Origin: Tubulanus polymorphus
Lineage: Eukaryota > Animalia > Nemertea
Length of the DNA: 64,000 nucleotides
Assembly: GCF_964204645.1 (NCBI RefSeq)
Contig: NC_134034.1
Coordinates: 9,684,962-9,748,961 of the forward strand
Reading direction: 5' to 3'
Below, piece after piece: positions 7,613-56,255 of the stretch; position 1 is the first letter of the stretch; every line of letters begins with the position of its first letter. Below the pieces are notes generated by a model. That model saw only the letters and a list, made by a program, of their open reading frames with translations. It was not told where the DNA came from and made no database searches. A program made the translations under genes and the position numbers.

Positions 7613-10600
7613 TCTTACGTTTTTGCGTACATTCTCATCAAAATCACGCGAAGATTATTCCATCGTATTCTAAACCTTAGCCCGCTTACCTCGTCGGTAA
7701 CTTTGCCAACGTTCAAGCACGCTTCGTCCAAAATGGCGAGGATTCCTTTATGAGGCTGTTCGACCAGGTCACATATGACTTTATTGTTGAAATAGTCGAC
7801 CTGCAAATTTTCTACATCTTAGAGGGATTTCATAAAATGTGGCCGCCATGACAACACCATACCTGTCAGCGACTCACATTAGGCTACCGATGGCTACTAT
7901 CTTTGGCTACCATTGGTCACGGCATCAGAAAATGACTAAATTTCAAGGAAAATTCTTATTTGTTCTTTACGGAACAAGATGGGAAATTCAAGGCCCCCGT
8001 GGCAGGCATATCAGATATCAAATTACATTTTTCGTACAAGACACAGAGCAAGATGGTCAATACAAAATGGACACCATGGCAGCCATCTTGGATATCAAAT
8101 TACATATTCATACCCATAATTAGAGCTGGTAGGGGCAACACGCAAAATTCAAGCTGGCCACCTTGACAGCCATATTGGATTATGTAGACCATCTTACGTT
8201 TTCTTAATTATAAGGAAAATTTGTTGATAAGTTTGGCAATGAGGGGAACGAGGGGAATGAGTGGAGCGAGGGGGACGAAAGGAATGAGTGGAACGAGGGG
8301 AACAAGAGGAATGAGGGGAACAAGAGGAATGAGGGGAACGAGGGGAATGAGTGGAACGAGGATGAATGATCGATACTCACGTGTTGCCACTGTATCCCCT
8401 CGCGATTATATTCGTCCTGTTCTTGTTTTAAAACCAATTCGATGAACAACTGTTGTAGTTTCTCGTTGCAGTAGTTTATACAGAACTGTTCAAAACTGAT
8501 GCAAAAGAAAGAATCTAGAAAACTGTATAAATTGGTCGGAGGTTTTCGGAGGACACATCACGGTTATTGGATGGGGGGTTTCATGTTGATGACGCAATCA
8601 TTTGGTCCTAAATAACCCCGGGAAGGTTTTAGCATACATGTAGTTTAAAACGTGAATTATAGCAAGGAGACATTAGATTTAGATAAAATCGTAACAAAAT
8701 GAAATATCATCAGCCGTTTCGGAAGATATCTCCCTCTGTGAGGAAATTAGCGAACTAGCCTATAGCCATCCAGTGACGAAGTTCATGACCTATTTTTCTT
8801 GATGCTGTAACGTCGATATGTTTACGTCGTTTCCGCTTTAACCGGAAGAAGATGACAATAAGGAAGATCGAAACATTGAAATATAAATCAATTAAACTCC
8901 ATTAACCCTTTCAGTGCTGACTAATCAATACCATATAGTACTGGAGATAATTTGAAAATTTTGAAAAATTCCACCCTAGTGCGTTGAATAAGGGGAATAC
9001 CACTATAGTACGTCTGCACCGTGGCGTGGTATATCATGAGTTACTAATATTTCACTGTGTTTGACAGGTGCTGCCATCTTTCAATAGAGATAAAAACTAA
9101 TTACTAATTACAGCAAAATCAATCACTGATTCATACACCGCACTGCGGTGTAGATGCACTGAAAGGGTTAAGACATAATTACCGATATTACCTGTTATTG
9201 TCGAATATTTCGAATCCGTAAATATCGAGAACTCCTATGACGGTATTCTTCCCGTGACGGATGACATCTGCTTTCATTTCGATTGCGTGATTGATTCGCC
9301 CGACGATCCACGAGAACATCCTCTCATAGACGGCCTAATTCGAAAAAATTAGAATAGCGTAAAAATTTCCGATCAGGTGTGTCGAGGGTTATGTTTAGAG
9401 GGGGGAGGGACAAAAATATTTTAGGATACCTTATCACATCATTAGGGGCACCTATAAGCCAAAGCCATGAAGCCGAGTCAAGCAGTCCGGGATCTTCCCC
9501 CAGCAATTTTTAAAATTTTAGTCTCGTCTGAGGCCATTTCAAGGCATCCTTAACAAAATTTTGGATCAAGAGAAAGCTTTTTATTAACATTTTTAGGGGC
9601 ATCTCAAGAGATTCATAGGGGAAAAGACCCCACCAAGCTACCTTTGACTGCGACTGATGTTATCAGCCAATGCTGAAATTGAGCACACCCAGAGACACCT
9701 TTTGATGCCTTCGAATGCCGTTTCCACTTTTAGTTTCACCTAAAAGCGTAGCTATGAATCATAAACTCTGATTCCTCTGATGATCTGATCGCGTAGATAG
9801 GTCGCGAAAAGTCGTCGTCGTACCTTTGCGAAAGCGTCCCTGGCGTAATAAGCATCGATGACCGTGTGTTGTTTTTCCATGATTTCACCGCGGGCCGCGA
9901 CGACCCGATAGCACAACGCTTTCTCCAACTCCGCCTCGTCGACCGATAACAACGTGGCGATATTAGCGAGAATATCTTTATCCGGAATACTAGCGTGGTC
10001 GCCTTCTTCGTCGAACTGCAGGTTTCCCTGAAACAACGTAATCAATAATCGCTTGATTCATCGCTAACTTGTAACTCAGTATTCCTGAAGATGACTATTA
10101 GTATATAATCGAAACGTTTCATAAACTACCAGCTCAAGGAAACATTTTCAGACTTAATCTTATCGTTATCGTTGTGGGATTCCCGTTATATATTATCGAT
10201 ACAGTAAAATAATGACTAGGCTAGAAAAAATTCATACCAGATTCTCATTTCGGCTTAACTTGAAGTTGACCCAGCTGGCAGCTTATCTACCGTGTATGTT
10301 ACTTTTTTCTTAAAATTATGATCAAGCTAACAATAACTGAATCCATTAGACCTGGCGGAAATGAACTGATTACAAATTTCAACGCAGTTTAAAAAATGAC
10401 CCGGCTGATCAGGAGAATCAAGGTTCCGCAATAGTTTTATCGGAAATAAACTAGAAATGATTTTGATTTAGAGAGTATTTTGCAGACCACCCCAGATAAG
10501 ACCACTTGAATATCTCTTCCAACTTTTTTTAATAGCCTATTTCCCAAAATTGAAGTAGTTCTAAAGGTGTTTTGGGCATTATGTTCAAATTGAAGGAGCA

Positions 10601-44115: not shown

Positions 44116-44765
44116 ATAGATTACTTATTCATTTAGAGTGGGAGAAATTTTCTGATGAAAACGGATTCGAGTGAATTCGTCCAGGAGATCGAATAGAAAC
44201 CACGACGGACGATAGGCTGACGAGACCGAGAACGTTATTAAAAGTATTCGAAACCGTGAGTCGCTATTTTAATCGAGAAATTGTATATTTATTTATTTAT
44301 TGGTTGGTTGGTTTATCGATGATTGAGAGTAGAAATTTTGAAAAGAGGTGTTTCCGTTCCATTGACCAAGAAAAAACTCGGGTCTTATTGAAAATAATTC
44401 CGATATTATTGCCTGTTCTCATGAATTGTCTTGGTTTGTAAAAATATCCGATCGTGAAACTAAACCACAGATAGATTTACTGACTACTCAAAGCGTTTTG
44501 TAACCAACTTGAAATACTGTCTGGAACTCTGAATTTCGACTAAACTGTGGCACAGAATTTTACCCAACCCTGTGTGGTCACTGACTTAAAACGGCAGTCA
44601 GGTTACTGACTAAACTGCAGTCTGGTTACTGACTAAATGGTAGTCCGATAATGGAATCATATTTTCGGGTAGGCCTTTACCCACGCCTTACAACCATCTG
44701 TCTACTCTGTCCACTTAATAACGTTTCATTTCCTTCATTTGTAGGTTGACGAAAAGCAGTTTTAA

Positions 44766-45233
<468 letters not shown>

Positions 45234-45360
45234 AGCGTGCGGGCGTCGCGAGTGAGACACCGCGAGCGGGTTTAAACCGTTTGAAAAAACGCTACGGATC
45301 TGCGTTATGACGATAATCGATAAGAGAAGCCCGCGATAATAACGAAAAATTTATCTTCGG

Positions 45361-45404
45361 TATTCCTGAAGACGGCTGATAGAATATAGCCGAAATATCG
45401 AATA
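45361..45404 (+). ncRNA. Minimal type-I hammerhead ribozyme motif (Penelope-like)
   Basis: TATTC-CTGAAGA-C-GGCT-gatagaatat-AGCC-GAAA-TA-TC-GAATA: 5-bp stem I, core CUGAAGA/GAAA, 4-bp stem II, palindromic vestigial stem III. Confidence 0.7.
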
Positions 45405-45415
45405 AACTACGACTA

Positions 45416-45757
45416 CAGGGTCCCTACAACTCCGTGATTCTACTCCTTGTTAACCAACCATATTTTTCAAGGTCCTTGAATATCCTTGAATTTGAGCAAA
45501 ATACCCAAAAGTCCTTGAAAATTCCTTGAATTTTGAGAAATTGGCAATTAGAAAATGTTTAGGTTTTAAGCCTAGTTATTATACACACAGATTCCACTGA
45601 ATGAAATTTACTGAGTTTACTGAAATCAGCAGTACTGATTTAGGAGGAGTCTACAGCGATTGGGATATGAAAGTGATGCCGACACTCTTCTCGAAATTTG
45701 AAATGTTCTCCTTGAAAACTCCTTGAATTCTGGAATCGCTGATCTGTAGGGACCCTG
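45416..45757. mobile_element. hAT-like MITE (CAGGGTCCCTACA TIR) inserted into the hammerhead-bearing repeat
   Basis: 13-bp TIRs; related copies at about 770-1130, 10530-10660 and 12703-13110. Confidence 0.6.
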
Positions 45758-46697
45758 CGCTAGGTCAAGGAAACATTTTTGGGCTTTGTATCATTTTCTC
45801 GTTGTTATTGGTCGGTTTTCTATAAAGAAACTGACGTTCTTTATTCCCGGACTGTGTTCAAACTGCCATCTATTGTTCATTTTATCATCAACTCGCTTTT
45901 TGGGTTTTTTTTTCTAGTTTATGTTTCCAAATCGTAATTTTCAGACCAATCTGCGTGATTTTGTCTAGATAAGACCGGGCTAATACTTTGACCCGGATTT
46001 ATTGCGGGTTATGGCACCTCCACCAGATATTACCATTTCTAAACCACTTGATTTTCTGACGATTTATTATATATATTTTTTCGCAGATCTGAATTTTAAC
46101 GACAAGGTCTGAAATATTTTTTCGTGAAGCTGTCTCATTTTCCTGTGATAGTGATGTTAGAATGATGAAAGTAGAAATTGTTGACTTAGTGTTATACTTA
46201 TTGAATGTTTTTTGGGTAATAGGTCTCTGCTTTGCCTGATATTGTAAGTTTTTGATAGTTGGTTCATTAGCATCCTCCCTCGGCAGGGATTTGAACCTGA
46301 TGGCATCGAGACTCGTCGCAGTATGAAGGTCCTGCCACACTAGCTACACGCGCAGCTTAGATGATATCATTATTAGCCAATCAGATATCCCGTTTTATCT
46401 TAGCCCGTAAAATTTACCTCAGTGATTATACAACGAGCAATCTGATTGGTGCAGCAAGTTTTCGTGCGGTAAACCTGCACAGGTCTAGTGTGGCAGGGTT
46501 TCGTACCGTGGCTGAGTGTGGCTGAATGTAGCAATGTCACCAGGTTCGAATCCCAGCTGGCGGGCGATGGATCAGTAGAGATAAATGGGTATTTATGTAA
46601 TACGGTACATTGTGTCTTTCCGCAAGTTTTTCTTCGTTTTTCGTTGAAACTCAACTGAAAAATTATCTATACTTTTCAATGATTATTATAATTATTA

Positions 46698-56142: not shown

Positions 56143-56255
56143 GGTTTTCCCAAAGATGAGTATTAGGATATAGTTGAAACGTTGGATAAACTATACTACT
56201 AGCTCAGGGAAACATTATCGGATTTAGTGTTATTGTTATCATTGTGGGATACTCC
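56143..56255 (+). mobile_element. Penelope-LTR-like fragment with mutated hammerhead core
   Basis: Same family as 10078 and 45361; core reads CAAAGA instead of CTGAAGA. Confidence 0.45.

Follow-up and report, generated by a model that had tools for sequence, protein, structure and literature searches.

The closest described system to the locus considered here is the minimal hammerhead ribozyme of Penelope-like elements (PLEs) (PMC4209133; Lünse et al. 2017 as cited in PMC6765202). As described by Cervera & de la Peña (2014, PMC4209133), these ribozymes of metazoan PLEs combine a short helix I with a long helix II and are bulged between positions 9 and 10.1. They also contain a G10.1-C11.1 pair and a palindrome at 15.2-16.2, and they are found as thousands of mostly single, truncated copies and in opposite-strand pairs (PMC4209133). 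Single minimal hammerheads gave no detectable cleavage in vitro, and dimers had low activity (PMC4209133). For an active PLE of Anolis, the hammerhead site is neither the start nor the end of any RNA-seq read, and the dominant substrate is unprocessed RNA (PMC11167929).

Hammerheads are additionally known from the 3ʹ UTR of Clec2 genes, where the ribozyme lies on the sense strand between the stop codon and the transcript end (Martick et al. 2008, as described in PMC6765202). Full helices and tertiary contacts characterize the discontinuous ribozyme of rodent Clec2, which cleaves in vitro and has been conserved among species (PMC6765202). Animal non-LTR retrozymes and PLE-derived tandem repeats (PMC7229834; bioRxiv 10.64898/2026.07.22.740005) resemble the family described below in that the same hammerhead unit forms 65-69-bp arrays in the genome, whereas the copy under study is a single unit. 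The insertions that contain these 65-69-bp arrays also include a PLE tail and an inverted tail scrap, and they show a target-site duplication. Published retrozyme units, at ~170-400 nt, are much longer than the 69-nt array unit.

The locus lies in the genome of the nemertean Tubulanus polymorphus, within a stretch of 64,000 nucleotides that was analyzed as a whole and is called the window. Here, a minimal hammerhead motif begins on the sense strand 128 nt past the stop codon of a UBE2D-type gene. The motif and its family share with the PLE ribozymes the type-I topology, a 5-bp helix I, a helix II of 6 bp in the family consensus, the A9-G10.1 bulge, the G10.1-C11.1 pair, the palindromic 15.2-16.2 positions and the lack of a real helix III. 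As in PLEs, the hammerhead belongs to the terminal repeat of an element encoding a reverse transcriptase (RT) and a GIY-YIG domain, and it occurs as thousands of mostly solitary truncated copies and in opposite-strand pairs 100-700 bp apart. The window copy departs from the PLE ribozymes in having a bulged C rather than U, an all-A/U palindrome and a helix II of 4-5 bp; at the level of sequence, nothing essential differs. The Clec2 hammerhead may be regarded as a functional analogue in position only: unlike the rodent ribozyme, the window motif is a minimal, dimer-type transposon relic, and it is bridged by contigs of inferred RNA.

The locus is best read as the decayed relic of a PLE 3ʹ end, carried as a passenger in the UBE2D 3ʹ UTR and without detectable function, with a probability of roughly 85%. 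An old, 5ʹ-truncated PLE insertion would have landed in the present-day 3ʹ UTR of an expressed UBE2D-type gene. This insertion would have comprised a single hammerhead unit between an inverted tail scrap and a tail, and a MITE would have split it later. In the PLE itself, the proposed role of the minimal, dimer-dependent hammerhead is the processing of element RNA in tandem or multimeric form. The window hammerhead would be a solitary relic transcribed within the UBE2D 3ʹ UTR, with the mRNA reading through both the hammerhead and the AATAAA.

The hammerhead motif and its surroundings

Direct reading of the sequence reproduces the motif layout of the original prediction letter for letter (Table 1). 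The hammerhead core, C3-U4-G5-A6-N7-G8-A9 ... G12-A13-A14 ... A15.1/U16.1-H17, is fully present, and the copy has every sequence feature expected of PLE minimal hammerheads, namely, the core, helices I and II, the A9-G10.1 bulge and the 15.2-16.2 palindrome. Helix II is closed by G10.1-C11.1 and contains 4 pairs, or 5 counting a G.U: GGCU(G)/(U)AGCC. In place of a helix III hairpin, A15.1 and U16.1 flank a 2-nt insert, giving an AUAU palindrome at 45395-98. C17 corresponds to position 45399, after which cleavage is predicted.

Table 1. Features of the UBE2D locus and of PLE-derived sequence in the window (positions are those of the window).
Feature	Position	Strand	Basis or remark
UBE2D-type E2 ubiquitin-conjugating enzyme CDS, 147 aa, intronless	44790..45233	+	
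UBE2D 5ʹ UTR intron, GT..AG	44256..44744	+	spliced out in runs X2, X5
Minimal type-I hammerhead motif	45361..45404	+	direct reading; descriptor match; 82-88% identity to PLE family copies
Helix I, 5 bp	45361-45365 (TATTC) with 45400-45404 (GAATA)	+	direct reading; 5/5 pairs
Core box 1, CTGAAGA (C3-A9)	45366-45372	+	direct reading
Bulged C, unpaired, before G10.1	45373	+	direct reading
Helix II strands, GGCT / AGCC	45374-45377 / 45388-45391; extended form 45374-77(78) with (45387)45388-91	+	
Helix II loop, 10 nt	45378-45387	+	direct reading
Core box 2, GAAA (including G12-A14)	45392-45395	+	direct reading
TA, then TC	45396-45397, then 45398-45399	+	direct reading
AATAAA overlapping helix I 3ʹ strand	45401..45406	+	direct reading
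Inverted, 5ʹ-truncated (extended) PLE tail scrap adjoining hammerhead	45285..45359	-	local alignment score 42; best of 300 shuffles 36
PLE linker after hammerhead (AACTAC...), interrupted by MITE	45405..45415	+	alignment; shared flanks of solitary copies
MITE in PLE linker, 342 bp, high-copy	45416..45757	.	25-nt terminal inverted repeats 45416-45440 / 45733-45757
PLE tail continuation past MITE, decayed, end approximate	45758..45825	+	alignment with MITE excised, score 82
Second PLE 3ʹ-end scrap	10071..10182	+	helix I 3/5 pairs, helix II 2 pairs; hammerhead broken
Third PLE 3ʹ-end scrap	56147..56254	+	core box mutated; hammerhead broken

A base-pair-aware descriptor written for this analysis demands a 5-bp helix I, CUGANGA, a bulge of 0-1 nt, a G-C-closed helix II no shorter than 4 bp, GAAA, a palindromic helix III and UH. 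Across the 64-kb window, both strands included, its only match is the motif itself, and 200 dinucleotide shuffles yield none. The Rfam hammerhead models have no match at gathering score in the whole window or at E<=10 in 45200-45560. This blank is uninformative on the window copy because consensus array units of the same PLE family are likewise missed; the Rfam hammerhead models are blind to the minimal type of this family. A looser pattern, CTGANGA..GAAA..TH, was dropped in favor of the descriptor as non-discriminating (14 window matches versus 6.3 expected). A match of the form CTGACGAG...CGAAAC, which spans 44217-44262 where the first 5ʹ UTR exon ends, was set aside as chance, since its helix II would have only 2 pairs and it has no family or Rfam support.

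PLE-derived sequence starts ~50 nt past the UBE2D stop codon and totals ~190 bp, with no ORF. Truncation has left the direct copy with just a few bases ahead of helix I, and the inverted scrap adjoins it; at 80% (E 5.6e-7), window 45281-45349 matches C6:9173943-9174008, which neighbors further hammerhead copies. The MITE begins 11 nt past GAATA, and its termini start CAGGGTCCCTACA. A first look at the genome gives 1294 candidate MITE copies, with matches that cover window 45414/16-45757, and depth over the MITE stretch in the DNA runs is ~100x that of the flanks. These candidate copies and the 25-nt inverted termini bear out the proposal that a MITE inserted later, downstream of the hammerhead. 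The expectation that no other copy in the window keeps both the core and stem I intact also holds, as the two other family scraps are broken in their helices or core. In many MITE copies, the start lies 2 nt earlier and reads TA, suggesting TA as the target site; in the window copy, this duplication is no longer intact. Decay of the sequence prevents a target-site duplication of the PLE scrap, or the exact duplication of the MITE, from being defined.

The Penelope-like source family

A search of the organismʹs own genome with window 45236-45420 gives 104 matches, confined to the motif region, at 74-88% identity. Many of the hammerhead copies stand in tandem arrays with a period of 65-69 bp, and others are solitary. 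The solitary copies have sequence in common upstream of helix I and in a ~70-nt tail downstream, and very often an inverted tail copy lies directly upstream of the hammerhead, head to head. This head-to-head architecture is also found at loci L005, L014, L020 and L021.

The parent element is locus L037, in which an 802-aa ORF (L037 2013-4418) lies between direct repeats, 2857 bp apart, that bear the hammerhead and tail. Its domains above Pfam cut-offs are RVT_1 (E 5.8e-10) and GIY-YIG (E 1.5e-5). An inverted truncated copy precedes the element, and a 13-bp target-site duplication flanks the whole. An ORF with RT and GIY-YIG domains, hammerhead direct repeats, an inverted partner and the 13-bp duplication together identify L037 as a PLE. 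The motif and both of its flanks are homologous to the 3ʹ end of this element, in agreement with the Penelope-like origin first proposed, and comparison of the sequences supports the assignment of the window motif to the minimal, presumably dimer-dependent type of PLE hammerhead.

The family consensus, CAGTATTC CTGAAGA T GACTAT TAGGAT ATAGTC GAAA CGTT GAATA AACTAC, has U as the bulged base, an ACGU palindrome and a helix II of 6 bp. Intact copies are common. The pattern TATTC CTGAAGA N16-26 GAAA N4 GAATA, which represents the helix I and both core boxes of the family, has 1417 exact matches genome-wide, with 0 for the reversed control, and 60 of 165 non-redundant sampled units (36%) pass the full hammerhead test that the window copy passes. 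Moreover, the AATAAA is conserved family-wide (alignment A1, columns 44-49), with five of its six columns at 90% or more and the sixth at 70% or more. Neither the unusual intactness implied by the original prediction nor the AATAAA overlap is therefore a special trait of the window copy, which is no more intact than typical family members, an outcome that the prediction itself had listed as counting against it. Within the family, 90.6% of cells are paired, versus 25-45% when the alignment is slid, and none of the covariation measures rises above the shuffles. This variation fits neutral decay in a young family.

The window copy itself is old: of 53 positions, 8 depart from the consensus. Half of these changes (4 of 8) are pairwise compensatory, replacing A-U with G-C in helix II and ACGU with AUAU. 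All consensus core residues are retained, and position 17 is C, the preferred cleavage-site base, versus U in the family consensus. The compensatory changes could hint at past RNA-level selection, most simply in a source subfamily that is now lost; a subfamily with the combination GGCT/AGCC, ATAT and C17 was not found in the genome, and CGAAATATCGAATA is common to only one other genomic copy. Five sequence variants fall in 45239-45360 and none in 45361-45415, numbers that are too small to carry meaning. SNPs are located at 45282, 45285, 45301 and 45335; behind 45344, an A is inserted.

At least three further consensus families of minimal hammerheads are present in the genome: CTGATGA-T-GGCTGTT..AACAGCC-GAAACGTT, GGCTAAC..GTTAGCC and GGCTAAT..TTTAGCC. 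Together, they account for 780 pattern matches, with 0 in the control (examples are G000:C1:168533-168566 and G000:C1:777507-777540). They have the same bulged U and ACGU palindrome, and by eye their helices II differ by compensatory pairs. These families probably belong to other PLE lineages.

Head-to-tail hammerhead arrays with a 69-bp unit are found at L023:1430-2640 (G000:C12:1961682-1964736; 17 units), as well as at L002, L008, L024 and L027. The L023 array is one insertion, composed of an inverted extended-tail scrap, the array and a last unit that is followed by the complete PLE tail, with a target-site duplication of ~12 bp, CTAAGATAAGGA. Its units end inside the tail start and then return to just before helix I, a structure that either rolling-circle copying or a series of template jumps would be expected to produce.

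Transcripts across the site and predicted folding

Six sequencing runs from the same organism are listed, five of which contain the stretch, and contigs of four were placed on 44300-46300. In X2 and X5, which come from different studies, a contig starts at 44745 with a loose end of 125-127 nt whose last 30 letters are window 44226-44255. This segment directly precedes GTGAGT, and the first UBE2D exon ends at 44255. X2 and X5 have no contigs in 44501-44567 and 44635-44701, inside the intron, whereas X1 and X3 are unspliced across the boundary. From the spliced junction in one pair and the unspliced sequence in the other, we infer that X2 and X5 are RNA and that X1 and X3 are DNA; the UBE2D gene thus has a spliced 5ʹ UTR intron. 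The term retrogene, under which the gene was first described, fits its intronless CDS but not this intron.

The X2 contigs cover 45239-45498 (0 mismatches), 45473-45719, 45690-46049 and 46087-46300. The first of these runs across both the AATAAA and the predicted cleavage site and extends beyond them by ~160 nt in one direction and ~100 nt in the other. The X5 contigs (45243-45519, 45730-46160 and 46132-46300) bridge both as well. In X2, contig-mean depth is 756-1333 after the stop codon versus 868-1003 in the CDS, a poor measure that serves as a hint only. The RNA contigs break between the CDS and the 3ʹ UTR at 45237, where all runs, including those of DNA, break at a 2-nt indel polymorphism; this indel lies 4 nt past the UBE2D stop codon and is present in DNA runs X1 and X3. 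Downstream, the contigs end near 46310, at the start of a high-copy repeat. In the two inferred RNA runs, abundant uncleaved RNA passes through the hammerhead, the AATAAA and the MITE. Because the contigs bridge the site and tile to ~46300, neither 45399 nor the AATAAA is the obligatory 3ʹ end of the gene. No polyA-type loose end is listed at 45410-45440 in the X2 and X5 contigs, which are blind to RNA ends and minor isoforms, and a small cleaved or polyadenylated fraction of the RNA may have escaped them.

Predicted folding does not favor an active ribozyme. The minimum free energy (MFE) fold of the window copy is predicted at -10.1 kcal/mol, versus -7.0 for the active-like fold. In the former, CGGUAUU, which includes the 5ʹ strand of helix I, pairs with AAUAUCG, and the bulged C pairs with G12, so that A13-C17 and G12 are buried. 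With a few added upstream bases, CUUCGG is predicted to pair with CUGAAG. The predicted MFE fold of the consensus PLE unit retains helices I and II. Between two molecules, helix III of the window copy would consist of four A-U pairs, and the AUAU duplex is predicted at +1.6 kcal/mol versus -1.7 for the ACGU of the family. Furthermore, the descriptor and the inspection of family scraps yield no second hammerhead-competent unit in the 64-kb window and hence no partner in cis. Judged from these folding energies, the lack of a partner and the published behavior of single minimal hammerheads, the window copy is probably inactive.

Weighing the alternatives

Low-level destabilization of the mRNA is one alternative to a relic without function. 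The hammerhead would cleave a minor fraction of UBE2D mRNA with the aid of chaperones or by pairing in trans, without setting the polyA site, and would trim expression in a manner akin to that of Clec2. Such a role would be in keeping with a complete core in an abundantly covered mRNA and with compensatory changes that keep helix II and the palindrome, and hammerheads between the stop codon and the polyA signal are known in Clec2 genes (PMC6765202). However, the predicted fold and interface energies and the absent partner weigh against it, a heterodimer with the common ACGU family would hold an A.C mismatch, and the family variation fits neutral decay, with covariation not above that of shuffles. 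No positive sign of cleavage was seen, and the proposal is improbable.

The original prediction went further, holding that the PLE fragment gave the gene its polyA signal and that the hammerhead acts as a dimer-dependent, self-cleaving switch setting the UBE2D 3ʹ end. The contigs of inferred RNA from two different studies speak against this, as they bridge the site and tile for ~900 nt further, with no polyA-type loose end listed at 45410-45440. An AATAAA found in nearly all PLE family members is no special signal, even though it overlaps helix I here. Additionally, the sense orientation, the position 128 nt past the stop codon and the intact core with C17, all of which suit a switch, are set against a transcript with no partner hammerhead, an AUAU interface predicted to be unstable and a predicted misfold as the MFE structure, and single minimal hammerheads are without detectable in vitro cleavage (PMC4209133). 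Both the polyA-donor and the cleavage-switch ideas are thus not supported and have several points against them, and the combined reading is very unlikely.

It has also to be considered that the scrap arrived together with the CDS, as a chimeric retrocopy produced when the PLE reverse transcriptase switched template from element RNA to UBE2D mRNA. The CDS is intronless, PLE sequence begins only ~50 nt past the stop codon, and contig C4 contains a UBE2D-like gene with several exons (G000:C4:537200-537997). Yet neither a polyA remnant nor a clear junction can be seen, a spliced 5ʹ UTR intron belongs to the gene itself, and the same inverted-plus-direct PLE insertions occur genome-wide with no gene attached. 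The event is moreover not reconstructable from the closest paralog (G000:C10:11040871-11041311), which is intronless too and 84% identical at the amino acid level: homology stops at the CDS, there is no common UTR sequence, and the 3ʹ UTR that preceded the insertion is not recoverable from it. A chimeric origin is accordingly highly improbable. Also highly improbable is a domesticated dosage sensor, in which AUAU pairing of this highly expressed mRNA with a second UBE2D mRNA or with rare AUGU/AUAU Penelope transcripts would bring about concentration-dependent self-cleavage and feedback on the mRNA level.

As a passenger PLE relic, the locus would be one more truncated PLE tail with a minimal hammerhead in a 3ʹ UTR, an ordinary case of an already known kind (Cervera & de la Peña 2014). 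For annotation, the stretch is best masked as PLE and MITE rather than recorded as a regulatory ribozyme, and it neatly illustrates a minimal hammerhead tolerated on the sense strand of a host mRNA. Were cleavage true, it would represent a rare co-option of a transposon-derived, dimer-type hammerhead into the control of an mRNA 3ʹ end; nothing found points there.

Other repeats lie close to the gene. A very high-copy repeat occupies window 46270-46570, and within the 46243-46300 bin, depth in DNA run X3 rises from ~25 to ~10000. Both strands of the repeat have tRNA T-arm motifs resembling GGTTCGAATCC, and it may represent a pair of tRNA-derived SINEs; ARAGORN reports no tRNA in the repeat (~46270-46570). 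Another high-copy repeat lies inside the UBE2D 5ʹ UTR intron, at 44432-44474 and 44595, where X3 depth reaches up to 137600 and many contigs join 44471 to 44595.
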